From the IMG/VR virus record IMGVR_UViG_3300021520_000002, positions 62,001-126,000 of that record: a stretch of 64,000 bases of DNA. The stretch is one strand, 5' to 3'. The notes under the pieces are model-generated. The model saw nothing but the letters and a program-made list of their open reading frames with translations, had not been told where the DNA came from and did not search any database. This document shows positions 545 through 61,288 of this stretch, piece by piece. The first letter of the stretch is position 1; each line of letters begins with the position of its first letter. Both the position numbers and the translations under genes were made by a program.

Positions 545-1948
545 ATGGCAAGAAAAAAAGAAGATACAAATAGAAGCGCAACTAATAGTTTTGATTCATC
601 TTCATTTGAAGATGCATCAACAGAACAAGCTGAAAAGTTAGGAACAGCATTTGAAAGTATAATTACAAGTAAGTATGGTTTTGCAAGAGCACCGGAACCA
701 TATCTAACTCCATTTGGTATTCAGCATCTTGATACATTAATTGGTGGAGGAATAACATCTTCTGCTCCAGTTATGTTAACATCAACACCTGAAACTGGAA
801 AGAGTACTTTAGCATTTCAACTTTCATCTATATTTCAAATATTGTATCCTAATTCAATGGTTGTTTATTTAGATATTGAAACAGCTGCTAATAAATCAAA
901 TAAGAATAATGCAATGTCAAGAGTTAATATATTTAAAATTGATGAGAAGAGATTTAGATATGAACCTTTGGTTATTAATATAAATCAGTTGTTTGAATTG
1001 ATTGAACAATTATGTGCTGTTAAACAGTTGTTTGAAGAGAAATCTCAGAAAGAGTTTAAAGTGTTAATTATTTGGGATAGTATAGCGGCAACTCCATCTT
1101 CTAAAGTTGAAGATGCAGAAGATCCGAATAAAATTATTGGTGTTAAAGCACGTCAGCTTACATTCGCTCTCGAGAAATATTTGCCGATGATGGCATTCAA
1201 TAGAATAACATTTCTAGCTATTGATCAGGTTCGTGCAAATCTTAATATTGATCCTTATGCTCAAAAAGAAAAATCTGTTGGAGTATTTAAAGACTATCGT
1301 GCCGCTACATCTATATCTGCATTAAATCATAGAGTTGCTCAATGGTTATTTTTATCCAGAAAAGCAGCTATTACACCAGATGATGGATTAGGCATTAATG
1401 GTTGGTATATGAGTATGTATGTTGAGAAGAATAAAATTGCTCCATCTCAGGAAGCTATTACTTGTGTTTTTGATAAGAGAAATGGTCTTCATAAATTTTG
1501 GAGTGAGTATACATTTCTTAGTGAGATGATGCCATCTGAAAAGAAGTATTATAAAACTGAAGATAAAATACCATTTCCATTATCTATTAAAAAATCTGGT
1601 CCTCAAGTATATCTTGAATTTATAGATCCAACATCAGGAAGTGTTGCATACACATCTGAAAAAATGTATAAGAAGAATATGAATAAAGCTTATATTGAAG
1701 ATAGTACTTTTAGACAAGCTTTTGATTATGTAACAAGTATGGCTGTTGAACTTAGAATTAGACAAGGACTTTTTAGGGAAAGTGAAACTGCTATTAATAT
1801 AAGTTCTGAAGTAATTGAAGAATTTGAAGCTGAAAGTCTTTCAGATGATAATTTTGATAAACCAAAAATTTCAGTTGCTGAACAAGTTGCCGCTACAATA
1901 CCTTCTATCGATGGAGAACAAGAAGCTACTTATGAATCAATATTTTAA
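545..1948 (+). CDS. uvsX: RecA/UvsX-like recombinase
   Basis: TPFGIQHLDTLIGGGI, Walker A STPETGKST, YLDIE, Walker B IIWDSIAA, IDQVR, VEKNKIAP. Confidence 0.88.
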   Translation: MARKKEDTNRSATNSFDSSSFEDASTEQAEKLGTAFESIITSKYGFARAPEPYLTPFGIQHLDTLIGGGITSSAPVMLTSTPETGKSTLAFQLSSIFQILYPNSMVVYLDIETAANKSNKNNAMSRVNIFKIDEKRFRYEPLVININQLFELIEQLCAVKQLFEEKSQKEFKVLIIWDSIAATPSSKVEDAEDPNKIIGVKARQLTFALEKYLPMMAFNRITFLAIDQVRANLNIDPYAQKEKSVGVFKDYRAATSISALNHRVAQWLFLSRKAAITPDDGLGINGWYMSMYVEKNKIAPSQEAITCVFDKRNGLHKFWSEYTFLSEMMPSEKKYYKTEDKIPFPLSIKKSGPQVYLEFIDPTSGSVAYTSEKMYKKNMNKAYIEDSTFRQAFDYVTSMAVELRIRQGLFRESETAINISSEVIEEFEAESLSDDNFDKPKISVAEQVAATIPSIDGEQEATYESIF

Positions 1949-1962
1949 TATTGGAGACTATT

Positions 1963-2931
1963 ATGGATGTTAGATTTTTAAAAGAGATTAGTGAAGCGTA
2001 TATTATAGACACTGAACTTGATGCTTTTCCGGAACAAATATATAATGAATTATATGATATTACTAAGTTCATTCAGAAAAATGATCCGGAATTATATAAT
2101 GAACTTTATGAATCAACTAGAATTACTCAACAGAAAATTTTGAAAACATATCTTGATTATGTTTTTGAATTAAATGTTGTTTCTGAAGAGATTGAAGATC
2201 AAGAATTATTGCTTGAAGAACCTATAACTATGGCTGTAACTGGTGGTTTAGGATTACTTTTGGCATATTTATATCGAAAGGGATTGACTAAAGGTATAAT
2301 GAAAATTGGTGCTGAAGCTGGAAAAGTATTTCAATATATTGGGAATTTTCTAACTAAAAAAGGTAAATATATGCAACTTAGATATTCTATAATTCAAGAG
2401 AATTATAAAAAATGTTATCTAAAATGTGATATTGAAAAACCTTCAGATATTAGTGCTCTTTCATATGGTTCTATTTCTTCATCTTCAACATTTTCATCAA
2501 AAAAAACTTCAGATCAAGCTGAATGTCTTAGAGAATGTTATCTTGATAATTTAATTGATGTGATTTGTTTACATATGGAAGGATATTTTGCTTGTTTAAA
2601 ACGGACTGGAAATTCTGCCGCTTTACAAAATACTGAAACAGATGATGTTATGAAAATGATATCGTCAACTAATATTGCAACAGCGTGTTCTGATTATTAT
2701 GATTTGGCGAGAGAATCTCTTGGAAATTTTTATAAAGTTTTAGATTTAGTTTATAATGATATGAGTGAAGATGATAATAAATTAGAATGGATGAATAAGT
2801 TTAGAGGGAGATTATTTCAAACTCGTCAACAAGTTCAGAAATATAGTAATAATGAATTACAAAGATATGAATCTTCTGGTAATTCAAAACCTGATTTTAG
2901 AGGTAAAAGACCTGATTTCAGAAGGTCTTAA
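1963..2931 (+). CDS. hypothetical protein, possibly a processed virion/head protein with one hydrophobic segment
   Basis: ORF track start 1951 (TTG); ATG 1963 follows GGAG. Acidic N-terminus ending LLLEE, then AVTGGLGLLLAYLY, then a Cys-rich helical region. Confidence 0.6.
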   Translation: MDVRFLKEISEAYIIDTELDAFPEQIYNELYDITKFIQKNDPELYNELYESTRITQQKILKTYLDYVFELNVVSEEIEDQELLLEEPITMAVTGGLGLLLAYLYRKGLTKGIMKIGAEAGKVFQYIGNFLTKKGKYMQLRYSIIQENYKKCYLKCDIEKPSDISALSYGSISSSSTFSSKKTSDQAECLRECYLDNLIDVICLHMEGYFACLKRTGNSAALQNTETDDVMKMISSTNIATACSDYYDLARESLGNFYKVLDLVYNDMSEDDNKLEWMNKFRGRLFQTRQQVQKYSNNELQRYESSGNSKPDFRGKRPDFRRS

Positions 2932-2994
2932 TAAACATTTTATTCCCCTTAGGAGGGTGTATATAATATCCTATTTCCAGGTCGGAGGACAGAA

Positions 2995-3258
2995 ATGATC
3001 AGAGCTACAATGTCAAAACGTAGTAAAGCTGGGAAAATGAATGCTCTCGGTGGAGCTTTTGCAATGAGAATTGCAAGACAAAAAAATGATCCTCTTTATA
3101 CCAAAATGAAAAAACTTAAAATATTATATAAAGCAGCTAAGAGAACTTTACTTCAAAGATATGGAGCAAAAGGTAAAATGGCAGCTCGTATGGCTGCAAC
3201 CGGCAAAATTCAAACCTTTGCACCTAAAGTTATGGGTGGTCAATTACATAAAAGATAA
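2995..3258 (+). CDS. small very basic (Lys/Arg/Met/Ala-rich) protein, possibly DNA-condensing
   Basis: GGAGG RBS; only one acidic residue in 87 aa; followed by a hairpin. Confidence 0.65.
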   Translation: MIRATMSKRSKAGKMNALGGAFAMRIARQKNDPLYTKMKKLKILYKAAKRTLLQRYGAKGKMAARMAATGKIQTFAPKVMGGQLHKR

Positions 3259-3270
3259 ATATTTTAAAAA

Positions 3271-3302
3271 TAATTGGGAAGGTGTCAAAGCCTTCCCAAT
3301 TA
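3271..3302 (+). terminator. intrinsic terminator-like hairpin
   Basis: TAATTGGGAAGG...CCTTCCCAATT inverted repeat followed by a T-rich tract. Confidence 0.7.
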
Positions 3303-3319
3303 TTATATTTGCAATTTAT

Positions 3320-3329
3320 ATATAGAAAT
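3320..3329 (+). promoter_or_regulatory. putative phage promoter motif ATATAGAAAT
   Basis: One of six intergenic copies, each oriented towards the adjacent gene. Confidence 0.5.
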
Positions 3330-3364
3330 TATCTAATTATATAAATCTATAAAATGGAGGCGCT

Positions 3365-4336
3365 GTGTCTGATTTAAATAGTATGATGGAGATGCTTGAA
3401 GTACCACAAGATATAATTGATGATATAATTGAAACTGAAAAAAGTGCTGAGATTCCTGAAAAACAATTTGAAATTATCATACCCGATATTACACGAGCAT
3501 ATTCTTTATTTGATATTGATAAATTTACAAAAGAATTACAGGAAAAATCTGCCGCTAAAAATCAAGCATATAGAGAATTATTTCAAAATATTAATGCTTA
3601 TGATTTGGCAAACAATTGTATTAGAGATATTGTTTATAAATTATTAAATACACCAGTTGAATCTTTTGCCGATAAATGGCTACCAGTATTATTAAGATCA
3701 ACTTTGGGAAATGCTATACATAATTTTATACAAGACAATTCTAATCAATTTACGGAACGAGAAGTATCAATAAAAATACCATCAAAAAGAGTTTCTGTTA
3801 GATTAGATAATTTAATTGGTCCAAATATTTTAGTCGAGATTAAAAGTTTACCTTATTCAGAATATGAAAAAATAGTTAAATCTTGTAAGCCAAGAATTGC
3901 TGATTTTTATCAAGCAGTAGCTTATAAATATTTCTTAGAAAATTTTCTTGAAGAAGCCAAAAATTCTGGAGAGAAGACAAGAACTCCACCTCCAGCTTTA
4001 AATAATTATGATATTCAACAAATTCAGTTTATTTATGTTGCTCATGATGTTGTAGCAAATGATGTTGAATCACTTGCTGAAATATTAGAGAGAATTAAAC
4101 AACTTAAAAGACTTCTTAATTCTAAATCTAATACATTCTTCTTCATGACAACATTAGCAATTGATGTTACAAATAATATTGCTGATCCATATATTAATTA
4201 TATTAAAAATAAATTAGAGCGTATTAATCATTATTTAGATAGCGGCAAGATTCCACCAAATGATGATGAATTTGTAGATACAGGTAAATGTTTCTTCTGT
4301 CTCTACAAGAAATTATGTAATCAGAATAAGAGATAA
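3365..4336 (+). CDS. Cas4-like PD-(D/E)XK exonuclease with 4Fe-4S cysteines (solo, no CRISPR)
   Basis: N-terminal C-x-R, GNAIH, RLD, EIKS, QAVAY and C-terminal CFFCLYKKLC. Confidence 0.8.
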   Translation: MSDLNSMMEMLEVPQDIIDDIIETEKSAEIPEKQFEIIIPDITRAYSLFDIDKFTKELQEKSAAKNQAYRELFQNINAYDLANNCIRDIVYKLLNTPVESFADKWLPVLLRSTLGNAIHNFIQDNSNQFTEREVSIKIPSKRVSVRLDNLIGPNILVEIKSLPYSEYEKIVKSCKPRIADFYQAVAYKYFLENFLEEAKNSGEKTRTPPPALNNYDIQQIQFIYVAHDVVANDVESLAEILERIKQLKRLLNSKSNTFFFMTTLAIDVTNNIADPYINYIKNKLERINHYLDSGKIPPNDDEFVDTGKCFFCLYKKLCNQNKR

Positions 4337-4631: not shown

Positions 4632-5084
4632 ATGATTAGTATAACTTATTTATTCGAATCAGAAAAGGAGATCTTGCCGATGAAAATTGGTATTATAGGA
4701 TATTCAGCAAAAAAATTTGATAAAAAATTAGCTGAAAAATTAATTATAGAAGGTTTAAATAAATTCAAAGCTAAAGAAGGAGATGAGTTAGTTTCTGGAT
4801 TAACTGATTTAGGAATACCAGGATTAGCTTATAGAATCGGTAAAAAAAGAAATATGAAACTTATCGGTATTGCTTGTAAAAAAGCACACGATGAAGATAG
4901 TGTTTGTTATCCTGTTGATAAAGAAATAATAGTTGGAGATAATTGGGGTGATGAATCAAAAACATTTTTAAAATATATAGATATGTTAATTAAAGTTGGT
5001 GGTGGAAAACAATCAATAGAAGAATATAATAGATTCAAAGGTCCTAAAATTGAGTTTGAATTGGCCGCTAAAGAGGATAATTAA
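4632..5084 (+). CDS. SLOG-superfamily (DprA/LOG/YspA-like) nucleotide-binding protein with N-terminal MISITYLFE leader
   Basis: MKIGIIGYS, LVSGLTDLGIPGLAY, LIGIAC, VGGGKQSIEE match the SLOG Rossmannoid pattern. Confidence 0.7.
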   Translation: MISITYLFESEKEILPMKIGIIGYSAKKFDKKLAEKLIIEGLNKFKAKEGDELVSGLTDLGIPGLAYRIGKKRNMKLIGIACKKAHDEDSVCYPVDKEIIVGDNWGDESKTFLKYIDMLIKVGGGKQSIEEYNRFKGPKIEFELAAKEDN

Positions 5085-6785: not shown

Positions 6786-8987
6786 ATGAATATAACGGGA
6801 CAAAGTCAATACTCAAAAATTGTGTCAGGGTTAAGACAACCAGGTAGAAAATTTGTGGGTCAAGATTTAAATTTAATTTTTGTATATCCAATTTTATTAC
6901 CCAACAAATTACCTGATCTACAAAATGTAGAAATGATAATTAGAAATTTTATATCTACAACATTTTTAAAAGAGATATTCATACAAAACACTATTAGTAT
7001 GATTTCTTTAGCTAATCAGATTCAACCTCTTTCTGACGAGATGGGAATAAGGATAGATCCAAATGCAACAGTTGCTCAAGTATTTCAAAACAATCAAACT
7101 GTTGGAAATATTCCAGTTGCTACAAGATCTGATACTTCTCCAAATTATTCTGTAAGTACACAGTATAGAGATCAAATACAGAGAAAGATTAATGAGAAGA
7201 CAGCTGTAATTCAGAAAGTAGTAAAAACAGATCCAGTGATGAGTAAATTAAATCCTTATGTTGAAATGATAACTATGGGAAATCTTATAGATGTACCAGT
7301 TATTGTAGGTACAAAAACATTTCAAGTAGACACACTTTCATTAATTCATATTTTATTAGCGGCTGTTGCAACAGATACAAAATTAGATAGTATTACTAAT
7401 TTAAATATTATTTGTGATGAACTTAATAAATTAGATGAAACAAAATATTGGAGATTATTAAATAAACTTGCCGCTGAAGATAAATCATTTCATTTATGGT
7501 CATGGATTAAATCTAGTGGAGTTAAAGTTGGAGAAAAAATATCTAACAAAGCAACATTACATATTCCTGAAACATCTAAATTTGTTAGAACTCAAGCAAA
7601 AAAAGTTGGAACTTTTGCATCTAGAATTCAAACTCAGCGAGGTAGTCTCGCTGGTGATATAATTAATCCTCTTAGAGGTAAAACTGGAGATTTAAGTGAT
7701 TTTGCTGAAAGTTCAGCATTTGAAATATTACGAGTTATGAAAACTAATTTAGATCAAACAAGATTATTTTTTAGATTTGTTTTAGATCAAAAATTTCTTA
7801 AATCACAAGTTGGAATTGAACCTTTTGATGAAAAAAGTATGACAAAAGGAATGACAGATAATCTTATTCCAGATTTGAAAAGATCAAGAATATTAACAAT
7901 TTCTGGTTTTCAAGATTTGTTAGCAGCATTTGGACTTTCTGCTTTAAGATCCAGTATAGTTGCAATTGAACCAGAACCAGATGTTGTTGGTTTAGATTTA
8001 CTTAATATAATTAATTCAGAAATTAATGAAAAACTTATTACTAGTCTTACTCAAAGTAATGAAGATGTATTTAAAACTATTTCAAATGGAATGAATTCAG
8101 CTACTATTGAGGCGACTAAACAACAAATTGATGTTATTAAGAATTTATGTAATTTTGATATCGGCAAAGAGATGGTTGATACTGGTAATAAACTAGCTGA
8201 TAAAGAATTACCAGTTAATTTTAACAATCAACAATATGTAGATTATGCTCATACTTTATCTCAACTTGGAGAATTATCTTCTGTAAAAAATAAACAGATT
8301 GAAAATTTGTTATCTCAATTTAGAGATATTGGAACAGAAGTTGTTGGGGTTTTAAGAAATGAAATAAAGACTGAAATTGCACAACGTTTAAAAACTATAT
8401 TTCAAACTTATAGTCAAAATTATACGGCAAATAATGTACCAAGAGTAGCAATTGTATTGACTACTCCATCAAATCAAGTAACAACAGATCAAGTTAATCG
8501 AGGAATTATACCAACAACACTTAATTATCTTACAGAATATTTTTATTTTTTATATTTAAAAGCTTTACAAGTAGCTATTTGTAAACTTATAACTAAAGTT
8601 GAAGTAACAGTTGATACAGCATCTAATGACATTACTGATTGGCCGAATTATACATTGGTTTTGCCGATAGAAATTGTTTCAGCTTTACATGCTGCGATGG
8701 TTTCTAAAGGATGGGAAAGTTTAACTACAGATAAAGAAGGTAATTATTTAACGAGTGAAGAACTTTCTAAAGCTGGAATAATTCATGTGACAGAAAATTA
8801 TGTTAAAGGTATAGTTAAGTTTGTAAGTATGAAATTAGGAGTACCAAATTTTGTTGTAGTCGATTCTAAAAAAGGTGATGTTTATTATAAGTTAATGCAT
8901 CAATCTGGAATCAATAAAACAAAATTATCTACGTTAGAATTATTTGTTAAAGAATCAATAAATAAACCAATTATCAATTATTATTAG
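6786..8987 (+). CDS. large hypothetical protein, probably virion-associated
   Basis: 733-aa ORF with GAGGG RBS in the + strand structural block. Confidence 0.75.
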   Translation: MNITGQSQYSKIVSGLRQPGRKFVGQDLNLIFVYPILLPNKLPDLQNVEMIIRNFISTTFLKEIFIQNTISMISLANQIQPLSDEMGIRIDPNATVAQVFQNNQTVGNIPVATRSDTSPNYSVSTQYRDQIQRKINEKTAVIQKVVKTDPVMSKLNPYVEMITMGNLIDVPVIVGTKTFQVDTLSLIHILLAAVATDTKLDSITNLNIICDELNKLDETKYWRLLNKLAAEDKSFHLWSWIKSSGVKVGEKISNKATLHIPETSKFVRTQAKKVGTFASRIQTQRGSLAGDIINPLRGKTGDLSDFAESSAFEILRVMKTNLDQTRLFFRFVLDQKFLKSQVGIEPFDEKSMTKGMTDNLIPDLKRSRILTISGFQDLLAAFGLSALRSSIVAIEPEPDVVGLDLLNIINSEINEKLITSLTQSNEDVFKTISNGMNSATIEATKQQIDVIKNLCNFDIGKEMVDTGNKLADKELPVNFNNQQYVDYAHTLSQLGELSSVKNKQIENLLSQFRDIGTEVVGVLRNEIKTEIAQRLKTIFQTYSQNYTANNVPRVAIVLTTPSNQVTTDQVNRGIIPTTLNYLTEYFYFLYLKALQVAICKLITKVEVTVDTASNDITDWPNYTLVLPIEIVSALHAAMVSKGWESLTTDKEGNYLTSEELSKAGIIHVTENYVKGIVKFVSMKLGVPNFVVVDSKKGDVYYKLMHQSGINKTKLSTLELFVKESINKPIINYY

Positions 8988-10989: not shown

Positions 10990-10994
10990 AATTA

Positions 10995-11030
10995 ATATCG
11001 GCAAGATCTATTACTAAATCTTGCCGATAT
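10995..11030. repeat. intergenic palindrome copy 1 (ATCGGCAAGAT...ATCTTGCCGAT)
   Basis: ATATCGGCAAGATCTATTACTAAATCTTGCCGATAT. Confidence 0.95.
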
Positions 11031-11045
11031 TTAACGAGGTAAAAA

Positions 11046-15389: not shown

Positions 15390-15421
15390 ATCGGCAAGAT
15401 CTGAAAAATGATCTTGCCGAT
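15390..15421. repeat. intergenic palindrome copy 2
   Basis: ATCGGCAAGATCTGAAAAATGATCTTGCCGAT. Confidence 0.95.
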
Positions 15422-15448
15422 GTTCCAAAATTGGAGGCGAAAAATTTT

Positions 15449-17305
15449 ATGATACGGGCACCATTTGTTTTAACTAAATATGATGAAGAGTCACTGAATC
15501 TTCTTCAAGAAAGTAATGGAATAAGTATCGATGAATTTAAACAAAATGAGTGGTTTAAATGTCGAGAGAATCCATTCTATTTTATTTTGAATTATGTTTA
15601 CCTACCAGAAGTTGGTGGGAAATTAAAATACACAAAAGAATATTTACACCCAAAATTTAGAAGAATAATAAAATCAATATATAAAAATCATATGGCAATG
15701 TTAATGGCTTCAAGACAGTTAGGAAAAAGCTCAATTGCCGCTTGTCTACTTGCTTGGGCATTAATCTTTTTTCCAAATAATAGAGTTGTTATTCTAAACT
15801 ATAGAAAAATTGCCGCTCAAGAAAACTTAAAGAAAATAAAGTTCATAATACAAAATTTACCAAGTTGGATGAGGATTCCTTATAGATCTAAAAGTGAAAT
15901 AAAGGAATATGCTGAATTACAAAATGGTTCAAGAATAGACACATTTTATCCTTCATCAACAAGTTCTCCTTCTACATTAGCTCGTTCATTAACAGTTCCA
16001 ATCTTATATGTTGATGAGGTAGCTTTTATTTCTCATATGGAAGAAATTTATGGTTCAGCACAGCAGACACTTTCTAATGCTAGAGAACAAGCTATTAAAA
16101 ATAGTTATCCCTACTTTATTTTTATGACATCAACTCCCAACGGTGTTGAAGGTGATGGAAAATTCTTTTATGATTTTTGGATGAATGCTGTTGAATCTGA
16201 TGATCTTTTTGCTGAAGATCCAGAAACTGGAATGGAAGATTGGATACCAAATACTGATGATGTTCTTAATCAACCAGATAAAAATAGTTTTACAAGAGTT
16301 AAATATCATTGGTCTGAAAATCCAGATAAAACTATAGCATGGTATGAACAACAAAAGAAAGAACTCAACTTTGATCTTAGAAAGATTAATCAGGAATTAG
16401 ATATACTTTTTGTTGGTGGGACAAATTGTATTTTTACCGATGAAGTTTTACAAAAGTTAACATTTTTTCCTAGAGCAAATTATCTTGAACTTTCAAATCA
16501 AGTTCAGTTCGATATGTATGAGGAAATTGATACTCAAGATTATTATTTATTAGGGGTAGATACAGCGAGTTCTATTAAAGGAGCTTTTAATGCTCTTGAA
16601 TTATTTTCATATAGAGATTTTAAACAAGTTGGTGAAGCTAATGTTAGATTGGGGTCATTGACTAAATATGGTGAAACTGTTGATTCATTATTTAGACAAA
16701 TATATAAAACAACACAAAGAATAATTCTTTGTATAGAAAATAATTCTATCGGCAAAGCAGTTATTGAACATCTAATTTATCATATTAAAGATTTTAATTA
16801 TATGCCTTTTATATATAAAGAAAAAGATCCTGATATGGTAGAAAAACATGAATTTGGAATTTCAACAACTGGGAAATCTAAAGAATTAATGGTTTCTCTT
16901 TTTTATGATCATATTAATCAAAATCCACAATGTTTAAAATCCCAAAATTTAATTGCACAATTAGGTACAATTCAAAGATCGAATCGTGGAACAATTAAAG
17001 CTTCGGGTTTTAGTGATATGTTTATGTCTGGAAGTTTTTGTGCATATGTTCGTAATAGAACATTTCTAGATATTTTGCCGTTATTAGGTCAATCAAATAA
17101 ACAAGTACAAGATACATTTTTTAACTCGGTAAAAACTGCTGCTGAAATGATGAATGTTAAATTAATTATTAAAAATTCTTTACAACAAGAAACTGGTTTT
17201 ATGTCTGTTCAAGAAGATTCTTATAGAGATGAAGATGCTAAACACGAAAGTGATACAATATTAGATGAAGATTGGAGAATATATATACCGATCATGACAC
17301 CATAG
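15449..17305 (+). CDS. terL: terminase large subunit (T4 gp17-like)
   Basis: Walker A SRQLGKS, Walker B LYVDEVAF, coupling motif TSTPNG, nuclease LGVDTA, IENNSIG; ATG 15449 after GGAGG (ORF track 15431). Confidence 0.93.
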   Translation: MIRAPFVLTKYDEESLNLLQESNGISIDEFKQNEWFKCRENPFYFILNYVYLPEVGGKLKYTKEYLHPKFRRIIKSIYKNHMAMLMASRQLGKSSIAACLLAWALIFFPNNRVVILNYRKIAAQENLKKIKFIIQNLPSWMRIPYRSKSEIKEYAELQNGSRIDTFYPSSTSSPSTLARSLTVPILYVDEVAFISHMEEIYGSAQQTLSNAREQAIKNSYPYFIFMTSTPNGVEGDGKFFYDFWMNAVESDDLFAEDPETGMEDWIPNTDDVLNQPDKNSFTRVKYHWSENPDKTIAWYEQQKKELNFDLRKINQELDILFVGGTNCIFTDEVLQKLTFFPRANYLELSNQVQFDMYEEIDTQDYYLLGVDTASSIKGAFNALELFSYRDFKQVGEANVRLGSLTKYGETVDSLFRQIYKTTQRIILCIENNSIGKAVIEHLIYHIKDFNYMPFIYKEKDPDMVEKHEFGISTTGKSKELMVSLFYDHINQNPQCLKSQNLIAQLGTIQRSNRGTIKASGFSDMFMSGSFCAYVRNRTFLDILPLLGQSNKQVQDTFFNSVKTAAEMMNVKLIIKNSLQQETGFMSVQEDSYRDEDAKHESDTILDEDWRIYIPIMTP

Positions 17306-22253: not shown

Positions 22254-22288
22254 GATCGGCAAGATCTAGAAATAGAATCTTGCCGATC
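22254..22288. repeat. intergenic palindrome copy 3
   Basis: GATCGGCAAGATCTAGAAATAGAATCTTGCCGATC. Confidence 0.95.
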
Positions 22289-36769: not shown

Positions 36770-36782
36770 TTATCGGCAAAAA

Positions 36783-37674: not shown

Positions 37675-38472
37675 TTATGTATTAGTGTTTACATATTCTG
37701 AAATTTTATTCAAAGTTATTTCATTAGTTTTTTCAAGGTTATAACTTGCATGTATTAAAATTGGATTTTTTTCGTTTTTAAATAATTCTCTTATAAAACC
37801 TTTACGTAAATATATTTTATAAGTATTAGATACAATAATATCAAATATTGACCATAATGGAAGAATACGTTGAATAATATTAATGACTTCGAATTTTGAA
37901 CATTCACCAACATATAATTCAGATGGATTCATAATTGTGAAATATATTTGACAAATAGATTTATCTATAGTTACTAATATAAAACCATGATTTAAAATTG
38001 ATGGAAATGTTTTAAGAAAATCAGTTTTAAATTTAGTTTTTTGATCGTAATTTATACTATATTTTTGTGGTTCAATATTATTAAAAGTTAATTTTCCTTC
38101 TACACCAATTTCTAATTCATTTTGTTTTTTCTTTTCAACTACAGTTGTATAATGTATAAAACCATTTTCAGCTGTACCAAACATATCATCAGGCAAACGT
38201 TTTGTACAATCAAAATGTATCATATTATCTGAAACGCTATAAGTTGCAACTCCAGGAATAAGATCATATAATGATTGTATTTTAGTTAATTTGCCGATCT
38301 GTACGAAGAATTTTGAATAGAAATTATCATCCATTTTAACAAAGGGGCAAACAACATCTGTGATTGTATCTCTTATTTTTTTTGCTAAAATGAATTGTTG
38401 ATCTGATGATAGCATTACTTGTGTAAGATTGATATTTGATTTTTTGTTGTCAACTTGGTAATTAATTGGCAT
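37675..38472 (-). CDS. hypothetical protein, isolated minus-strand gene in the structural block
   Basis: AAGGAG RBS; own upstream motif and terminator. Confidence 0.7.
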   Translation of the reverse strand: MPINYQVDNKKSNINLTQVMLSSDQQFILAKKIRDTITDVVCPFVKMDDNFYSKFFVQIGKLTKIQSLYDLIPGVATYSVSDNMIHFDCTKRLPDDMFGTAENGFIHYTTVVEKKKQNELEIGVEGKLTFNNIEPQKYSINYDQKTKFKTDFLKTFPSILNHGFILVTIDKSICQIYFTIMNPSELYVGECSKFEVINIIQRILPLWSIFDIIVSNTYKIYLRKGFIRELFKNEKNPILIHASYNLEKTNEITLNKISEYVNTNT

Positions 38473-39512: not shown

Positions 39513-39526
39513 TTTGGAGAACTATT

Positions 39527-44259: not shown

Positions 44260-44297
44260 AAATCGGCAAGATCTATATTACAAGATCTTGCCGATTT
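44260..44297. repeat. intergenic palindrome copy 6
   Basis: AAATCGGCAAGATCTATATTACAAGATCTTGCCGATTT. Confidence 0.95.
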
Positions 44298-46849: not shown

Positions 46850-46888
46850 TTGGGTGACCCGAAGGTCACCCTTTGATTATGCAATTTG
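46850..46888 (-). terminator. cUUCGg-loop terminator, 39-bp direct repeat copy B
   Basis: Matches 45560..45598. Confidence 0.85.
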
Positions 46889-47498
46889 AATATTTGATAT
46901 TTGCTATATTATAAGCTATAGCTGCATCCTCTTTAACATCAAAATAACCTAAATGTATTCGTTTTTTATTAATACTAATTAAAGCTTTCCATTTTTTATG
47001 ATATTTATTCCAACTAACACCTTTATAACCATTATTATTTTGAATAGTTCTATTATTAATATTTTGCAATTTAGTACAAACTCTTAAATTCTCTTCAAGA
47101 TTATTTAATCTATTTCTATTTTTATGATCTATTTCATATCCTTCTGGTACTACTTGTCCAGACATAGAAATTATTGCTTGATGTAATCTTATATTATGTT
47201 GTATATTATCTATATTTGACCATGAAGTTGCAACATAATTTCCATCTGTTAATCCCCATTTGTATTTTTCTATTTCTGATTTATATTTAAGATCAAAAAT
47301 AGTTTCAGCAACTTCTTTACATTTTCGATTATATAATTTCATTCTACAAATATTATTTTCAACTATAATTTCATTTGGATCATATATTGTTCTTTCTAAT
47401 ATTTTACCATGAATTCGGATTTGTTGATAATGTTTACTACAATAATCTGTTTTTCCGTAACAATTTTTAACACATTTTTCAATAGAACAAATTTTCAT
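46866..47498 (-). CDS. free-standing HNH homing endonuclease with AP2 domain
   Basis: RLHQ...EIDHKNRNRLNNLEENLR; GYKGVSW...KWKA...HLGYF...AAIAYN. Confidence 0.88.
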   Translation of the reverse strand: MKICSIEKCVKNCYGKTDYCSKHYQQIRIHGKILERTIYDPNEIIVENNICRMKLYNRKCKEVAETIFDLKYKSEIEKYKWGLTDGNYVATSWSNIDNIQHNIRLHQAIISMSGQVVPEGYEIDHKNRNRLNNLEENLRVCTKLQNINNRTIQNNNGYKGVSWNKYHKKWKALISINKKRIHLGYFDVKEDAAIAYNIANIKYSNCIIKG

Positions 47499-49614: not shown

Positions 49615-49884
49615 TTATGGCCTCAATTTAACATCATATACAAGATTATTATGAATCAAACCTCCTAACTTAACAGCTTCATTCATTTTATCTTTATATA
49701 TAACTTTGCTAATTGTAAAACCAACAGACATTCCAACTAATACCCAAATTATCAGAATAGTTAAATGTTTCTTTAACCAGATATTGAGTTTATCCCACCA
49801 ATCTATTGGAGAATTAAAAGTTTTTACTTGTTGTTTCTGATTCATTATTATTTCACTTTCTGGATTGTATATTCCTTCACTCAT
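49615..49884 (-). CDS. small membrane protein
   Basis: One hydrophobic helix. Confidence 0.6.
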   Translation of the reverse strand: MSEGIYNPESEIIMNQKQQVKTFNSPIDWWDKLNIWLKKHLTILIIWVLVGMSVGFTISKVIYKDKMNEAVKLGGLIHNNLVYDVKLRP

Positions 49885-50374
49885 TTTTAACTCCTTTTAC
49901 ATTTTCTTGTATAAACTCTAAAAGATTTCCACCTTCAAATTTATATCCTTTTATTCCAGCGGCAAAAGCTGCTTGCATATCTCTATCACGATCTCCAATC
50001 ATAAAAGAAGCACCAGTATTTATTGGATTATTATCAAAAATTGCCGATAGAAATAAACCTGTCTTTGGTTTTCTACAACCACAATCATCTTCATCAATAT
50101 GTGGACATATATAGAATGCATCGATTTTTTTGCCGATATTAACTTCTAATGTTTTATTTATCCATTGATGTAATTTATCGACTTGTTTCTTTGTATATAA
50201 TTTTTTACCGATACCACTTTGATTAGTGATAACAATAACTTTATATCCATTCTTTTTTAATAATTTAATAGCTTCTTTAGCTCCATCGATCCATTTAAAA
50301 TCTTTCTTATCCCAAATATATCCAACATCATGATTGATAACTCCATCACGATCTAAAAAAGCAATCTTATTCAT
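49877..50374 (-). CDS. gmhB: D-glycero-D-manno-heptose 1,7-bisphosphate phosphatase
   Basis: FLDRDGVIN, ITNQSGIG, CPH...CGCRKPK, MIGDRDRD. Confidence 0.92.
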   Translation of the reverse strand: MNKIAFLDRDGVINHDVGYIWDKKDFKWIDGAKEAIKLLKKNGYKVIVITNQSGIGKKLYTKKQVDKLHQWINKTLEVNIGKKIDAFYICPHIDEDDCGCRKPKTGLFLSAIFDNNPINTGASFMIGDRDRDMQAAFAAGIKGYKFEGGNLLEFIQENVKGVKNE

Positions 50375-55388: not shown

Positions 55389-55649
55389 TTAAACCAACTC
55401 ATGTTGTTCTCCTTTATTGTAGTTTTTCATATATGGATCTATATTGTCCATAGCTTTTTGAATATTAAAACATATTTTACTTCCACAAATTGGACAATTT
55501 TTAGTTGCTCTTGTATCATAAATAATTTCACATTCAATACATAATACAGCATATCTTAATCCTATAGAACTAATTATTTGTGTATTATTTGATATAACTG
55601 AAATTTGTATGTCTTCTTTTTTAAAGAATTTATTTATGAAGTTGTTCAT
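55389..55649 (-). CDS. small zinc-ribbon protein
   Basis: CIEC...CPICGS. Confidence 0.65.
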   Translation of the reverse strand: MNNFINKFFKKEDIQISVISNNTQIISSIGLRYAVLCIECEIIYDTRATKNCPICGSKICFNIQKAMDNIDPYMKNYNKGEQHELV

Positions 55650-56398
55650 AATCTAAACTCTTGACCTTTCATGACAAATCCTTTAAATCCATCATGTTTA
55701 GCAGCAGGAAGAGGACCATCTTGATAATGACATAACCACATCTTTTTACGAATATTTTCAGGTAGTGTTAATAGTTCAGAATAATGTGCGTGAACTCCAC
55801 TTTTAAAAGGAGTTGTTTCACAGTCCTGAAAAATTAAATCTGCTGATGCATAAAAATCTTTAATCTGATTAGGATTAAACTGTGTATCTGTTGTTATGAA
55901 TATATTTTTAGTTTTAGTTCTTAATTTCAATCCAAAACATGGTCTAATACTAAATCCATCCATTATATGTACTACCTGGATAGGTGTTATTAAAATATTA
56001 TTCCAATGAACAGTTTCATTTTGACTAATAGCAATTACGTTAAAATAATCACTTAATTTCATTATCTTATTTTGAATACTTCCCAAACCACCAGATAATG
56101 TATTTTGCCATATTGATTCTTCTAAGGCTTTACTTATTAATAGATCAGGTTTAGTACAAGATGGATCAAAATATCGGCAAAAAGCTAAATATTCTAATCC
56201 ACCGGCATGATCTGCATGAAGATGTGAAATATACACTTCTGTTATATCTTTATATGACATTCCAGAATCTTTCAATGAAAATCTAATATCTGAACCTGCA
56301 TCAATTAAAAGTTTTTCTTTACCTTTAGTTAATAACATATTTGTTTGATAATTTGTCATTGAAAAAGCACTTCCACTTCCTAAGAATTTTAGTATCAT
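55646..56398 (-). CDS. MBL-fold metallohydrolase, Apyc1-like (cyclic nucleotide phosphodiesterase / RNase Z-like)
   Basis: FLGSGSAF, LIDAG, SHLHADHAGGLE, LSGGL, FQDCE, GVHAHY.ELLTLP, WLCHY. Confidence 0.8.
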   Translation of the reverse strand: MILKFLGSGSAFSMTNYQTNMLLTKGKEKLLIDAGSDIRFSLKDSGMSYKDITEVYISHLHADHAGGLEYLAFCRYFDPSCTKPDLLISKALEESIWQNTLSGGLGSIQNKIMKLSDYFNVIAISQNETVHWNNILITPIQVVHIMDGFSIRPCFGLKLRTKTKNIFITTDTQFNPNQIKDFYASADLIFQDCETTPFKSGVHAHYSELLTLPENIRKKMWLCHYQDGPLPAAKHDGFKGFVMKGQEFRL

Positions 56399-56424: not shown

Positions 56425-56512
56425 TGGTGGCGCTGACTGGACTTGAACCAGCATGGAGAAAATCTCCGAGAGATTTTAAATCTCTTGTGTAAACCAATTC
56501 CACCACAGCGCC
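56425..56512 (-). tRNA. tRNA-Leu(TAA)
   Basis: GGCGCTG...AGAGA-TTTAAAA-TCTCT...GTTCAAGTC...CAGCGCC A CCA; long variable arm. Confidence 0.95.
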
Positions 56513-56814: not shown

Positions 56815-56904
56815 TGGCGGAGAGCGTAGGATTTGAACCCACGAACCGCTTTCACGATTTCTAGTTTTCAAGACTAGCACCATCAGCCTCTCGGTCAGCT
56901 CTCC
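56815..56904 (-). tRNA. tRNA-Ser(TGA)
   Basis: GGAGAGC...CTAGT-CTTGAAA-ACTAG...GTTCAAATC...GCTCTCC G CCA; long variable arm. Confidence 0.95.
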
Positions 56905-56910: not shown

Positions 56911-57150
56911 TTATTTGCCGATTTTAATTTTCTCTATAATTTTACAATCCTCTAAATGACAAAAATCATCAATTCTACAATCATAGCAAACTGTTAGATT
57001 TGGACAACAATCTTCAACTATTCTAAAAACATCATTACCAAATCTACCATGTAGTTTATTTAAAATAAATGTGATCATTCTACTATTTTTAGCTGTAATA
57101 AGTTTACAATCATTACATTTCTCATCACATAAATATCTTCTATCTTTCAT
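56911..57150 (-). CDS. small Cys-rich protein
   Basis: CDEKCNDC...CCP...CYDCRIDDFCH. Confidence 0.6.
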   Translation of the reverse strand: MKDRRYLCDEKCNDCKLITAKNSRMITFILNKLHGRFGNDVFRIVEDCCPNLTVCYDCRIDDFCHLEDCKIIEKIKIGK

Positions 57151-58528: not shown

Positions 58529-58562
58529 TATCGGCAAGACCTATTTCTAGATCTTGCCGATA
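58529..58562. repeat. intergenic palindrome copy 7
   Basis: TATCGGCAAGACCTATTTCTAGATCTTGCCGATA. Confidence 0.95.
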
Positions 58563-58567: not shown

Positions 58568-59215
58568 TTATTTCCAATTATCCTGAATCACCACTTTTCC
58601 ATCAATATGGGTGTGGCGTCCAATTTTATCTATGAGTTTATCATGTTCTAATATTATATCTATTAATCTATCATTAATTACAGAAATTTCTCCATCAATT
58701 CTTTTCATCCATGCTATTACAGCTTCAGAGAAAGATGAGACTTCCACTATTCCTTTAACTGTTTTCTCTTTAGGTTCTTCAATAATAGTTTTCTGTTTAG
58801 GTTCTTCAAAGATAGATTTTATCTTTTGTTGTCTTGTAATAAGTTCTCTTGGTGGAACTACAAATTTCAAATCCCAATCAAAAGTATACTTTTCTAAAGC
58901 AACCCAAGGATTTGTTATTTTAGGTAATTTTATAACTCTTTTATAAAATTCTTCCCAAGACACAGCACTTTTTACAATTGTTGCCAATTTAAAAAGTATA
59001 GTATCAGGAATCAATACAATATCGTTACCAGTTATTCCTAATTTTTTATTTCTAAGTTTTGAAGCATTAAATGTTTTGATAAGAGTAGTTGCTATTTTAT
59101 ATCTAAGAGTTTCGATATCATCACATTTATGTTTCATTGCCGATAAAATAAAATCTATTTGTTTTCCATTTAATTTTTTAAATTCTTCTATTATTTGACT
59201 GTATTGTTTACTCAT
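58568..59215 (-). CDS. hypothetical protein
   Basis: AAGGAG RBS; 215 aa. Confidence 0.65.
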   Translation of the reverse strand: MSKQYSQIIEEFKKLNGKQIDFILSAMKHKCDDIETLRYKIATTLIKTFNASKLRNKKLGITGNDIVLIPDTILFKLATIVKSAVSWEEFYKRVIKLPKITNPWVALEKYTFDWDLKFVVPPRELITRQQKIKSIFEEPKQKTIIEEPKEKTVKGIVEVSSFSEAVIAWMKRIDGEISVINDRLIDIILEHDKLIDKIGRHTHIDGKVVIQDNWK

Positions 59216-60081: not shown

Positions 60082-60094
60082 ATTAACCTCCTTT

Positions 60095-60361
60095 TTAGTC
60101 GTTTCTTATATCAATGATTTTTGCTAAATAAATTGAATAAGAATTTTTTGGATCTTTTTCTTCAAATTTAAATAAATTATTTAAATATTTTGAAATTTTA
60201 TTTCTTTTCTTTAAAATAAGAGTATGAGTTGATGTGAAATCACTAAATTGTTCTTCTGTTATAATATTTTCAGTAACTAATTGTTTAAGAATAACTTCTT
60301 TAATATTATCACCAAAATTTTGTAGATCTTCAAATGAGTAATCAAAATGTTCTATTATCAT
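60095..60361 (-). CDS. hypothetical protein
   Basis: GAGGT RBS. Confidence 0.6.
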   Translation of the reverse strand: MIIEHFDYSFEDLQNFGDNIKEVILKQLVTENIITEEQFSDFTSTHTLILKKRNKISKYLNNLFKFEEKDPKNSYSIYLAKIIDIRND

Positions 60362-60385
60362 TTTACCTCTTTTTGTTAGATTGAG

Positions 60386-60457
60386 TTGCAGGGGTCAGAC
60401 TTGAACTGACGACTTGAAGCTTATGAGGCTTCCACGCTACCTCTGCGTCACCCTGCA
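60386..60457 (-). tRNA. tRNA with CAT anticodon (elongator Met or Ile2), CCA not encoded
   Basis: TGCAGGG...GAAGC-CTCATAA-GCTTC...GTCAG-TTCAAGT-CTGAC-CCCTGCA-A. Confidence 0.88.
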
Positions 60458-60470
60458 AATCTTTTAAGAA

Positions 60471-60542
60471 GGAGGAATTGGCTCAACTTTCCCTAAATTA
60501 TTGTCGACAATTAAATGTCATCGGATGTTTGGCCATTCCTCC
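60471..60542 (-). ncRNA. candidate small structured RNA upstream of the CAT tRNA
   Basis: Closing helix GGAGGAAT(T)GGC/GCCA(A)TTCCTCC with an inner ATTGTCGACAAT palindrome. Confidence 0.35.
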
Positions 60543-60546
60543 CAGT

Positions 60547-60771
60547 TTATTCTTTTTTTGTTTCTTCATTAAACCGCTTAAGAGTTTCAACGGCTCCTTC
60601 TAATTCTTTGCCGCATTTTTCACAAACTATTAAAGGTTCAGGACAAGGATCATCTTCAGGATTATAATCATATACTCCTTTTTTAACTACCTTTCCTTCT
60701 AGAGTGGCAAAAACTTTATCACCCTTCTTTAATGGCTGTTGACAAATGTAGCAGTTCTTAGCTGCTGCCAT
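60547..60771 (-). CDS. small zinc-finger protein
   Basis: CYIC...CEKC; AGGAGG RBS. Confidence 0.65.
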   Translation of the reverse strand: MAAAKNCYICQQPLKKGDKVFATLEGKVVKKGVYDYNPEDDPCPEPLIVCEKCGKELEGAVETLKRFNEETKKE

Positions 60772-60787
60772 AATTTAACCTCCTATT

Positions 60788-61288
60788 TTATAAATAACAG
60801 AAGATAACTTCTTCTGGAGTTATCTTTTCTAAAATTTTTAAAACAACATCTTTATCTAATCCTCCATTACTCACTCCTGGTATCGGCAAATAAACTTCTT
60901 TAAGATTATTATCTTTTATTAAATAACTTAATTGAATCATACTTCTTTGAATAAGTCCTAAATCAGCTTTACACCAGAAACCTGGAACATTTTCATCTGT
61001 TGGTTTAAATCTTGGTTTAATATGATCTAGTGTTTGTTCATAATTTCCATATGATGGTTTAACTGGAAAAACTATAATTCTTTCATATATAAATCCAACA
61101 ATATTTCCATATTTTTCTAAATGTTGTCCTAAATTTTTTGGAAGATCTAAAATTAATTTTGCCATAGCAAGAGCATTACCTCTACCAAGAACACCCTCTT
61201 TTGATTTTTTTATATATCCATTTGTAGTGATACACACAATTTTACCTTGTTTCCAAAGTTCTACTATATTAGCTTTTATTATTTTCAT
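60788..61288 (-). CDS. macrodomain-like (ADP-ribose-binding/hydrolase) protein
   Basis: ITTNGY...GVLGRGNA, FPVK, ADLGLIQRS, LPIPGVSNGGL; ATG 61288 (ORF track 61333). Confidence 0.7.
   Translation of the reverse strand: MKIIKANIVELWKQGKIVCITTNGYIKKSKEGVLGRGNALAMAKLILDLPKNLGQHLEKYGNIVGFIYERIIVFPVKPSYGNYEQTLDHIKPRFKPTDENVPGFWCKADLGLIQRSMIQLSYLIKDNNLKEVYLPIPGVSNGGLDKDVVLKILEKITPEEVIFCYL

Follow-up and report, generated by a model that had tools for sequence, protein, structure and literature searches.

An uncultured freshwater jumbo phage maintains the DNA word TTGCCG-N-T at about one copy per 1.2 kb on both strands and forces rare codons into its genes to do so, much as bacteria keep Chi or DNA uptake sequences. 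No protein that reads the word has been identified. The most abundant form, TTGCCGAT, occurs 34 times in the window (the 64,000-nucleotide stretch analyzed, positions 62,001 to 126,000 of IMG/VR record IMGVR_UViG_3300021520_000002) and 156 times in the 285.6-kb genome (G000). The word marks one widespread clade of low-GC jumbo phages that encode their own multisubunit RNA polymerase.

The sequence-only reading reported this octamer as strongly over-represented inside coding DNA, with 18 palindrome arms and 16 intragenic copies against about one expected, and the observation is confirmed. All 34 coordinates are exact; 18 are arms of nine inverted pairs and the other sixteen are solo copies. In 100 dinucleotide-preserving shuffles of the window, chance expectation is 0.60 (sd 0.71, maximum 3). 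Genome-wide, the 156 copies compare with 4.2, 2.4, and 2.0 under Markov orders 0 to 2. Loss of the enrichment under codon- and dinucleotide-preserving shuffles had been named beforehand as the outcome that would overturn the claim, but the enrichment persists: coding DNA holds 107 copies, against 10.15 +/- 2.73 (maximum 16) after shuffling synonymous codons within genes and 2.71 +/- 1.58 after shuffling codon order. The peptide contexts originally listed (LPI/LPM, FAD, IGK, xSAx, and FCR) are correct, and TGCCGCT is also enriched, with 68 copies against 2-5 expected.

Some details require correction. The word is longer than an octamer and has one degenerate position: TTGCCG-N-T with N = A in 156 copies, C in 39, G in 25, and T in 20, plus flanks T-(T/C) on the 5' side and A on the 3' side. 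The full word is (T/A)(T/C)TTGCCG-N-T-A, with 240 copies. All frames are used, but unevenly, with 33 sense copies in frame 1, 15 in frame 0, and 2 in frame 2. Of the copies listed as intragenic, that at 56915 lies inside only a doubtful short ORF and that at 4674 overlaps a possible RBS and ATG. Other top 8-mers, such as ACAAGTGG and GGAACATC, are local Gly-Thr-Ser coding repeats and not dispersed words. The copies and associated features in the window are as follows, with G002, G001, and G005 denoting relatives.

1181-1188 (+), solo TTGCCGAT, sense, in ORF 545-1948
3666-3673 (+), solo TTGCCGAT, sense, in ORF 3365-4336
4674-4681 (+), solo TTGCCGAT overlapping a possible RBS/ATG of ORF 4632-5084
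8160-8167 (-), solo copy, antisense, in ORF 6786-8987
8661-8668 (+), solo copy, sense, in ORF 6786-8987; conserved in G002
16748-16755 (-), solo copy, antisense, inside the large terminase gene 15431-17305
32767-32774 (+), solo copy, sense, in ORF 32488-32976
38291-38298 (+), solo copy, antisense, in clade-specific minus-strand ORF 37675-38472
40124-40131 (+), solo copy, sense, in ORF 39500-41194
40248-40255 (+), solo copy, sense, in ORF 39500-41194
50041-50048 (+), solo copy, antisense, in ORF 49877-50374 (-)
50130-50137 (+), solo copy, antisense, in ORF 49877-50374 (-); conserved in G002
56173-56180 (-), solo copy, sense, in ORF 55646-56398 (-)
56915-56922 (+), solo copy 11 nt from tRNA gene 56818-56904; probably not in a real protein gene
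59137-59144 (+), solo copy, antisense, in ORF 58568-59215 (-)
60882-60889 (-), solo copy, sense, in ORF 60788-61333 (-)
10994-11031, no strand assigned, intergenic hairpin, ATCGGCAAGATCT-loop-AAATCTTGCCGAT; position conserved in G002, G001, and G005
15390-15421, no strand assigned, intergenic hairpin just upstream of the terminase RBS; conserved in G002
22254-22288, no strand assigned, intergenic hairpin with TAGAAATA in the loop region
29273-29308, no strand assigned, intergenic hairpin; conserved in G002
35373-35406, no strand assigned, hairpin right after the major head protein gene (33750-35357); RNA contig depth falls from 12.4 and 9.9 to about 0.2-5 across it
36772-37090, no strand assigned, split hairpin, with left arm 36772-36779 and right arm 37083-37090 flanking a 92-aa ORF; the arms form a normal 24-nt-spaced hairpin in G002
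44260-44297, no strand assigned, hairpin after the tail sheath gene 42025-44253; conserved in G002 and partly in G001
58529-58562, no strand assigned, intergenic hairpin in the minus-strand arm, TAGAAATA on the sense (-) strand
62302-62336, no strand assigned, intergenic hairpin in the minus-strand arm, TAGAAATA on the sense (-) strand
1084-52822, 16 further copies of the degenerate word TTGCCG[C/G/T]T, at 1084-, 1887+, 3199-, 4241-, 5556+, 5707-, 7468+, 9712+, 15735+, 15810+, 17075+, 31007+, 43793+, 44519+, 49958-, and 52815+
46866-47498 (-), one of four clade-specific I-HmuI-like HNH + AP2 endonuclease genes (weak candidate reader)

The interpretation first offered was frame-independent selection at the DNA level, through a Chi-, parS-, or HIP1-like mark, a site for a genome-organizing protein, or a modification-biased motif, and it is partly supported. 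Its core inference is strongly supported by three results: survival of the enrichment in the codon shuffles, recruitment of rare-codon pairs, and equal numbers of sense and antisense copies (50 to 49). The rare-codon choices are ATC-GGC in 23 of 79 Ile-Gly-(Lys/Asn) contexts, TTG-CCG in 18 of 34 Leu-Pro-Ile/Met contexts, and GCC in 34 of 64 xTT-Ala-GAT contexts. Between 30% and 53% of the synonymously accessible tripeptide contexts carry the word, despite codon frequencies of 3-9%. Among the specific functions, parS is disfavored because the word is not a palindromic 16-mer and no ParB is encoded, and HIP1 is disfavored because the word is not a palindrome and no C5, N4/N6, or D12 methyltransferase is encoded. 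A Chi-like mark or a site for a genome-wide DNA-binding or DNA-processing protein remains compatible but is unproven, and the strong strand polarity typical of Chi is absent. The sequence-only reading did not see that solo copies turn over while the hairpins stay fixed, that the word is clade-specific, or that its architecture most resembles DNA uptake sequences.

The enrichment is 38-fold over base composition and 10-fold over synonymous-codon shuffles. About 80% of all GCCG tetramers in this CpG-depleted genome (O/E 0.41) carry the flanking T's of the word. Fold-enrichment is similar on both strands and in both genome arms, and spacing is Poisson-like and uniform along the genome. Solo copies are not concentrated upstream of genes (9 observed against 8.5 expected). 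Neighboring copies tend to alternate in orientation, with 48 opposite against 17 same within 600 nt (permutation P < 5e-5), as would be expected if both orientations are needed near any point.

Two inverted copies form the stems of 26 intergenic hairpins, and these behave differently from the solo copies in relatives. Solo sites are conserved at no more than the background rate; in relative G010, 4 of 62 are kept, against 6.5-8.7% for control 8-mers. Yet every member of the clade keeps a high density. Hairpin arms, by contrast, are conserved in place, in 19 of 24, 6 of 10, and 7 of 7 cases. In G010, the bases outside the core covary between the two arms, so the hairpin really forms. A shared reader or origin for solo copies and arms is suggested by their common lineage-specific flanks, ...TTGCCGATA in G000 and G(A/C)TCTTGCCG in G010, G001, and G003. 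The word is absent from a complete relative with 50% terminase identity and from 20 more distant relatives, whereas a different word, AAGCGC, is enriched in relative G006.

Taken together, these observations are best read, although only tentatively, as a clade-specific, density-selected signal that acts at the DNA level in either orientation and wherever it happens to lie, so that the lineage maintains the number of copies (about 0.84 per kb) and not their places. The analysis itself demonstrates that copies are created and lost by point changes, many of them synonymous, and that rare codons are tolerated to keep them. It is an inference that the word is read by a DNA-tracking or DNA-processing protein that needs to meet it frequently, on the model of Chi for RecBCD/AddAB-type helicase-nucleases or of uptake sequences for their receptor. 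Under this reading, the word most likely marks or protects phage DNA and seeds recombination-dependent replication after breaks, whichever direction the enzyme arrives from. Several findings weigh against this view. No reader protein has been found, the phage encodes no RecB-type PD-(D/E)XK nuclease, and, with the host unknown, the Chi analogy was not tested. Strand polarity is weak (65 to 37 overall, with no switch point), whereas classical Chi is strongly polar. Bacterial contigs binned together with G010 show only about 3-fold enrichment and no polarity, the excess of inverted pairs at 200-500 nt is more than simple same-strand redundancy predicts, and a non-adaptive drive would give the same static pattern. 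In intergenic spacers, two inverted copies give both orientations at once, and in this view they have been co-opted as the stems of stable hairpins that punctuate transcription units, for example directly after the major head protein gene.

Such a drive is a doubtful but possible alternative, in which the word has no function of its own and accumulates through sequence-biased mismatch repair or gene conversion templated by the abundant hairpin arms, leaving the hairpins as the only functional elements. The lack of positional conservation of solo sites, their resemblance to single hairpin arms including the lineage-specific flanks, and the clear constraint on the hairpins fit this idea. Furthermore, many differences between relatives are CpG transitions (TTGCTGAT or TTGCCAAT), and word density rises as CpG O/E falls across the genomes examined. 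However, the one-off variant TTGCTGAT is present in 40 copies against about 10 expected and is not depleted in the way that very-short-patch-type repair would predict; no C5 methyltransferase was found, and a Vsr-type repair gene was not sought. Complementarity between paired solo copies does not extend beyond the core, and the observed occupancy of accessible contexts, using rare codons, needs a very strong bias. A less likely possibility is that the word is the binding or nicking site of the clade-specific I-HmuI-like HNH-AP2 endonucleases, with the AP2 domain docking on the GCCG-N-T core and the HNH domain nicking nearby. This would give sequence-directed nicks on both strands that prime recombination or replication, possibly together with the clade-specific RecQ-like helicase and NAD-dependent ligase, which are also restricted to the word-bearing genomes. 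Four paralogous HNH_3+AP2 genes are present in G000, two in G010, and one in the G002 fragment, but none in the complete, word-free relative G007 or in 20 other relatives apart from one weak hit. The HNH part aligns to the nicking homing endonuclease I-HmuI (PDB 1U3E) and the AP2 part to the plant AP2 domains of WRI1, TEM1, and ERF1. Plant ERF and DREB AP2 domains bind GCCGCC and (A/G)CCGAC, GCCG-N-C cores that differ at exactly the position that is degenerate here. On the other hand, the association rests on a single clade in which 37 genes are clade-specific, and the ERF base-contacting Arg and Trp residues appear, on inspection of the alignment, to be mostly replaced in the phage domains. 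HNH-AP2 homing endonucleases occur in 1,380 phage records, which were not examined for a comparable word, although no report of one is known. Moreover, homing endonuclease targets are normally long and rare and tend to be lost rather than multiplied.

It is also unlikely that the word is kept as the target of a DNA modification, by a host methyltransferase or as a sequence-specific hypermodified base, that protects or marks phage DNA. The word does have the form typical of Type IIG or Type III methyltransferase sites (asymmetric, 7-8 bp, with one N), it contains a CpG in a genome otherwise depleted of CpG, and a sister lineage carries a different short GC-rich word that includes the palindrome AGCGCT. 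However, no C5, N4/N6, or D12 methyltransferase is encoded in G000, and no C5 methyltransferase in G002, G006, G007, or the further genomes G008 and G009. Modification was not measured, as all runs are kept only as contigs, without read-level data. Phages, in addition, usually avoid rather than accumulate modification or restriction targets. Least likely is a transcription signal, either a sigma-28/FliA-like -10 element or a promoter, pause, or terminator element of the phage's own RNA polymerase, a reading already largely refuted for the solo copies. In its favor, GCCGATAA, identical to the FliA -10 consensus, occurs 71 times; hairpin arms sit 15-45 nt upstream of start codons; and in G000 and G002 the hairpin loops contain TAGAAATA, the core of the phage promoter-like motif TTTCATATAGAAATAATA. 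The resemblance to the sigma-28 element is nevertheless coincidental: besides the sense-antisense equality and the lack of enrichment upstream of starts, no -35 TAAA lies at the required spacing, no sigma-70-family region 2 is encoded, and the phage carries two sets of split multisubunit RNA polymerase genes. The hairpin loops of G010, G001, and G003 also lack TAGAAATA.

The closest known systems are the DNA uptake sequences (DUS of Neisseriaceae and USS of Pasteurellaceae). These are likewise short, asymmetric, GC-rich words with AT-rich flanks, at about 1 copy per 1-2 kb, found in both orientations and inside genes in all frames with preferred peptide contexts. Their inverted pairs form intergenic terminator-like hairpins, lineage 'dialects' exist, and density is maintained while individual sites turn over. 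Here, however, the carrier is a virus with its own RNA polymerase rather than a competent bacterium, no competence receptor and no host carrying the word are known, and the drive through uptake followed by recombination has no obvious counterpart in a phage. Chi sites, and Chi enrichment in phages that rely on host RecBCD/AddAB, also involve an over-represented asymmetric 5-8-mer in coding DNA that is independent of frame, depends on frequency and not on place, and differs between host lineages. Chi is strongly polar with respect to replication or DNA ends, is far less enriched in E. coli than the word is here, and is not known to build hairpins; the host of this phage, and therefore its Chi, is unknown.

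HIP1 and other highly iterated palindromes of cyanobacteria share a hyper-abundant octamer inside genes that is maintained against codon preference, is lineage-specific, and has a still debated function, but HIP1 is a palindrome linked to cognate methyltransferases, whereas this word is asymmetric and no methyltransferase was found. For the hairpins only, REP/BIME elements and the T4-type PeSL promoter-stem-loop cassettes offer repeated intergenic stem-loops of conserved sequence at gene boundaries, and the hairpin split by an inserted small ORF recalls their modular shuffling. Those elements do not have hundreds of single-arm copies inside coding DNA. Finally, the stoperators of cluster A mycobacteriophages and the dispersed C1 operators of phage P1 are asymmetric protein-binding words scattered in tens of copies over a phage genome, but they are mostly intergenic, oriented with transcription, conserved in place, and ten times rarer, and they belong to temperate phages with a known repressor.

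The phage, here termed G000, is represented by a single viral contig of 285,572 bp that IMG/VR rates as 95% complete, with a GC content of 29.4%; the window is bases 62,001-126,000 of this contig. It was recovered from freshwater lake metagenomes, where lake samples hold the phage at about 27x depth, and also appears in metatranscriptome assemblies. The window encodes a T4-type large terminase, a tail sheath, an SLT-domain protein of 1,643 aa, and a major head protein, whereas a family B DNA polymerase, class II ribonucleotide reductase, type II topoisomerase, a clamp-loader-like ATPase, a RecQ-like helicase, an NAD-dependent ligase, and the RNA polymerase genes lie outside it. G000 is therefore an uncultured jumbo myovirus that transcribes with its own multisubunit polymerases, as phiKZ- and AR9-like phages do, although no tubulin (PhuZ) was found in the genome. 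It has no near relative among deposited phages, the closest sharing only about 25% terminase identity. Genes run rightward up to about 107 kb and mostly leftward after that. Other features of the genome are as follows.

G000 196621-197664, 177910-182556, 183080-184858, 222157-224127, 237060-239048, and 240184-241374 (outside the window): two sets of split beta/beta'-like multisubunit RNA polymerase genes.
Window 26191-29226: the DnaB-like replicative helicase, encoded in two ORFs (26191-27081 and 28240-29226) separated by an endonuclease VII/HNH-like gene (27349-28152); it appears to be a gene split by a mobile endonuclease.
G000 0-40 kb and 260-285 kb (outside the window): very large ORFs (up to 2,233 aa) containing long 9-nt-periodic Gly-Thr-Ser/Gly-Ser-Ser collagen-like repeats.
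G000 232054-232128 (-), with window tRNAs at 56428-56512, 56818-56904, and 60386-60457: at least ten tRNA genes, seven outside the window and three inside it (the stretch 80,001-120,000 was scanned for tRNAs by Rfam only); one has anticodon CTA (amber-suppressor-like, called 'Pyl' by ARAGORN), but ORFs are long under table 11, so no recoding is evident. Rfam finds only tRNAs in the window.
G000, 12 sites, for example upstream of the genes at window 15431 and 22251: ribosome-binding sites of a subset of genes that read GGAGGCGT/GGAGGCGA (12 copies against 0.3 expected), in which the position after GGAGG departs from the canonical GGAGGTGA complement of the 16S rRNA tail.

The over-representation of an octamer inside coding DNA, first noticed in the sequence-only reading, is real and highly significant. 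All 34 positions reported for the window are exact, against 0.6 expected from dinucleotide-preserving shuffles. The genome holds 156 copies, against 2-4 expected under Markov orders 0 to 2, comprising 26 inverted pairs and about 104 solo copies. Loss of the enrichment under codon- and dinucleotide-preserving shuffles had been named in advance as the outcome that would overturn the observation, and it did not occur: coding DNA holds 107 copies, against 10.2 +/- 2.7 after synonymous codons were shuffled within each gene, which keeps every protein and each gene's codon usage, and 2.7 after codon order was shuffled. Codon choice shows the pressure directly. Ile-Gly-(Lys/Asn) is written ATC-GGC in 23 of 79 cases, although ATC and GGC make up 7% and 3% of their codon families, Leu-Pro-(Ile/Met) is written TTG-CCG in 18 of 34 cases, and xTT-Ala-GAT uses GCC in 34 of 64 cases. 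The phage tRNA-Ile(GAT) and tRNA-Pro(TGG) read codons that the word forces into genes. The other top-ranking 8-mers (ACAAGTGG, GGAACATC, and TCTGGAAC) are accounted for by the local Gly-Thr-Ser coding repeats near the contig ends and are not dispersed words.

The word is longer than the octamer first reported and has one soft position. It reads (T/A)(T/C)-TTGCCG-N-T-A, with N = A 156, C 39, G 25, and T 20, whereas every other single-base variant stays near expectation. In this form TTGCCGNT totals 240 copies. About 80% of all GCCG tetramers in the genome carry the word's flanking T's, although CpG overall is depleted to 0.41 of expectation. Solo copies are equally sense (50) and antisense (49) and use all frames, though unevenly. 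Relative to codon-aware expectation, both strands in both genome arms are enriched 7- to 18-fold, and copies are spread uniformly with near-Poisson spacing. They are not concentrated upstream of start codons (9 observed against 8.5 expected). A mild excess on the + strand (65 to 37) recurs in G010, a relative described below (59 to 31), but there is no switch point. An unexpected regularity is that neighboring solo copies within 600 nt are in opposite orientation in 48 cases and in the same orientation in 17 (permutation P < 5e-5), and in G010 the counts are 14 and 6 (P = 0.02). No full explanation for this preference is at hand. The effect is mainly at 200-500 nt, where G000 has 33 opposite against 7 same, and the hairpin-like order ATCGGCAA...TTGCCGAT is the commonest, but complementarity does not extend beyond the core.

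The inverted pairs read ATCGGCAAGATCT-loop-AGATCTTGCCGAT and lie in intergenic spacers, 15-45 nt before the next start codon. Ordinary terminator-like hairpins with unrelated GC-rich stems and A/T-rich flanks also exist in the genome. One word-hairpin directly follows the major head protein gene, and RNA-contig depth falls from 12.4 and 9.9 to about 0.2-5 across it. However, the RNA runs are kept only as contigs, whose breaks are themselves caused by the repeated hairpin, and transcript ends were therefore not mapped. In G000 and its relative G002, the loop region is TAGAAATA on the sense strand, which is the core of a promoter-like motif, TTTCATATAGAAATAATA. This motif occurs about 45 times in G000, 15-70 nt upstream of start codons, mainly in the minus-strand (probably early) arm (in the window, for example, at 46789, 46816, 58496, and 61491 on the - strand). 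Its core is also enriched in a word-free relative, G007, and it is probably the promoter of one of the phage RNA polymerases. In the relatives G010, G001, and G003 the loops are different, while the stem CGGCAAGA(T/G)C is kept. Moreover, the bases just outside the TTGCCG core covary between the two arms in G010 (at/at, ac/gt, ag/ct, tc/ga), so base pairing matters. One hairpin in the window (36772-37090, with arms at 36772 and 37083) is split by a 92-aa ORF with no known family, whereas in G002 the two arms form a normal hairpin. The 5' leader of this ORF duplicates the leader that follows the hairpin at 35406, suggesting that the hairpins act as insertion or recombination points for small gene cassettes.

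An exact-pattern scan and a terminase profile recovered related contigs: G002, at about 74% nucleotide identity; G001, G003, and G005, at about 69%; and G010, a 256.7-kb contig binned into a bacterial MAG. All are enriched in the word, while the reversed control pattern is near zero. A metagenome scan found at least 119 contigs with the hairpin. The low-GC contigs among them are relatives from lakes, sludge, and digesters, all rich in TTGCCG, the high-GC contigs are coding coincidences (GGC-AAG-ATC codons), and no bacterial contig with the hairpin was found. In contrast, the complete genome G007 (314.8 kb, terminase 50% identical) has no such word and a normal CpG level, and twenty more distant relatives show nothing. 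A further relative with 51% terminase identity, G006 (IMGVR_UViG_3300026488_000030, locus L033), is enriched in a different dispersed word, AAGCGC(C/T). In this genome AGCGCT occurs 25 times in 21.6 kb and AAGCGCCG 16 times against 0.4 expected, and the word lies inside genes and is not part of that genome's hairpins. CpG is depleted to 0.41 of expectation in G000 and 0.44 in G002 but is near 0.93-0.96 in G007 and G006, which lack the TTGCCG word, and across the genomes examined word density rises as CpG O/E falls.

Hairpin arms are conserved in place (19 of 24, 6 of 10, and 7 of 7). Solo copies are conserved barely or not at all above control 8-mers: 16 of 45 against 15-22% in G002, and 4 of 62 against 6.5-8.7% in G010. 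The solo copies nevertheless follow the lineage-specific flanks of the arms. The lineage therefore keeps the number of copies, not their positions.

Several identities can be set aside. The word is not a protein motif or a translational device: pausing by rare codons is rejected because the same DNA word is selected in six frames that encode different codons. It is not a dispersed repeat family of the MITE or REP type, as solo copies share only about 11 nt, lie in intact ORFs, and show no extended complementarity when paired. Solo copies are not promoters, and the identity of GCCGATAA with the sigma-28 (FliA/SigD) -10 consensus (GCCGATAA/T) is a coincidence, because no TAAA lies at the required 11-15 nt upstream, sense equals antisense, copies are not enriched upstream of starts, no Sigma70_r2 domain is encoded in G000, and the phage brings its own polymerase. 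It is not parS, a palindromic site of about 16 bp present in few copies, as the word is asymmetric, has 240 copies, and is accompanied by no ParB_N domain in G000. Nor is it HIP1, as the word is not a palindrome and the methyltransferase families PF00145, PF01555, and PF02086 are all absent from G000. The near-complete strand skew with a defined switch point that characterizes KOPS/SRS translocase-orienting sequences is also lacking. The sequence-only reading had inferred frame-independent selection at the DNA level and had listed a Chi-, parS-, or HIP1-like mark, a genome-organizing protein site, or a modification-biased motif as its basis; this interpretation is partly supported, in that the DNA-level selection is borne out but parS and HIP1 are not.

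The combination of an asymmetric word, both orientations, any frame, Poisson placement, rapid turnover with maintained density, lineage dialects, and inverted pairs reused as intergenic hairpins is the pattern of Chi and, even more closely, of DNA uptake sequences. The word is therefore read as a frequency-dependent DNA signal for a protein that tracks or processes DNA, and the tendency of neighbors to alternate in orientation fits a signal that must be met from either direction. The analysis demonstrates a density-selected signal acting at the DNA level, but that it protects or marks phage DNA and seeds recombination-dependent replication is an inference that has not been demonstrated. Neither the reader protein nor the host has been identified, Chi-like polarity is weak, and no RecB-type PD-(D/E)XK nuclease is encoded in G000. 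Attempts to find the host gave no assignment: relatives of the ribonucleotide reductase point to no particular phylum, and the 'Lentimicrobiaceae' MAG that contains G010 is only about 3-fold enriched in the word and shows no polarity. This roughly 30%-GC MAG has its own over-represented element, GCGAACTATGTCA, with about 32 copies in 300 kb (its contigs C2-C30, loci L177-L192).

A lead on the reader comes from the 37 genes shared by the word-bearing G000 and G010 but absent from word-free G007. Four of these are paralogous I-HmuI-like HNH nickases fused to an AP2 DNA-binding domain, and a RecQ-like helicase and the NAD ligase are also in the set. The four HNH-AP2 genes of G000 are located as follows.

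G000 19188-19745: HNH-AP2 gene.
G000 108866-109498: HNH-AP2 gene.
G000 133874-134434: HNH-AP2 gene.
G000 135528-136190: HNH-AP2 gene.

Plant AP2 domains bind GCCGCC and GCCGAC, which are GCCG-N-C cores that differ at the very position that is degenerate in this word, whereas the core here is GCCG-N-T. The lead is weak, however, because the association rests on one clade, such endonucleases are common selfish genes in phages, and the ERF contact residues are not conserved. Binding of an HNH-AP2 protein to word DNA such as TTGCCGATA was not modeled, and the match to an AP2/ERF-type site (GCC box, DRE) is left undecided. PHROG and Pfam scans of the clade-specific unknown proteins gave no DNA-binding candidate. 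The idea that nick-primed replication replaces a primase is rejected, as a weak gp61-like Zn-ribbon/Toprim ORF is present both in G000 and in G007. An 8-nt primase recognition site has a precedent in phage NrS-1, but there in only two copies per genome (PMC7102993). A non-adaptive drive and a modification target are rivals that these data do not exclude. A bolder possibility, not excluded but considered unlikely, is that a whole clade of jumbo phages uses a virus-specific 'self' word, read by a phage-encoded DNA-processing enzyme, for example the HNH-AP2 nickases, to direct nicking, recombination-dependent replication, or discrimination of self from host DNA. Sister lineages would then have evolved different words, and this would be the first uptake-sequence- or Chi-like iterated signal that belongs to a virus rather than to a cell.

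If the reader protein is phage-encoded, it would reveal a new way for large phages to mark, protect, or replicate their DNA; if it is host-encoded, the word becomes a handle for assigning hosts to this widespread clade of uncultured low-GC jumbo phages. The word is also a simple diagnostic for the clade in metagenomes and a confounder for codon-usage and k-mer-based host prediction. A literature search for the octamer returned only primer hits, and keyword searches for over-represented octamers in phage genomes, and for iterated palindromes linked to methyltransferases, found no precedent.

Comparison with the best-studied iterated words places the element closest to Chi and the uptake sequences. 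Like Chi, the regulatory sequence of RecBCD/AddAB, it is a short asymmetric word that is statistically over-represented and independent of reading frame. However, the strong strand polarity of Chi relative to replication direction or DNA ends is not seen, as fold-enrichment is similar on both strands. Its abundance, polarity, and recognition by the helicase-nuclease in a host chromosome were not tested, the host being unknown, and the roughly 3-fold enrichment without polarity in the bacterial contigs binned with G010 does not decide the matter. As with DUS/USS, there are hundreds of copies in both orientations, many of them inside genes, and inverted pairs form intergenic terminator-like hairpins; an uptake receptor or competence machinery acting on the word was not examined, the carrier being a phage with no known host. 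Chi, DUS/USS, and HIP1 are classic cases in which a DNA-level signal overrides codon choice, and all the well-studied examples are cellular. Here a clade-wide word with this architecture, hundreds of frame-independent copies plus inverted pairs that form hairpins, is found in a virus that carries its own RNA polymerases.
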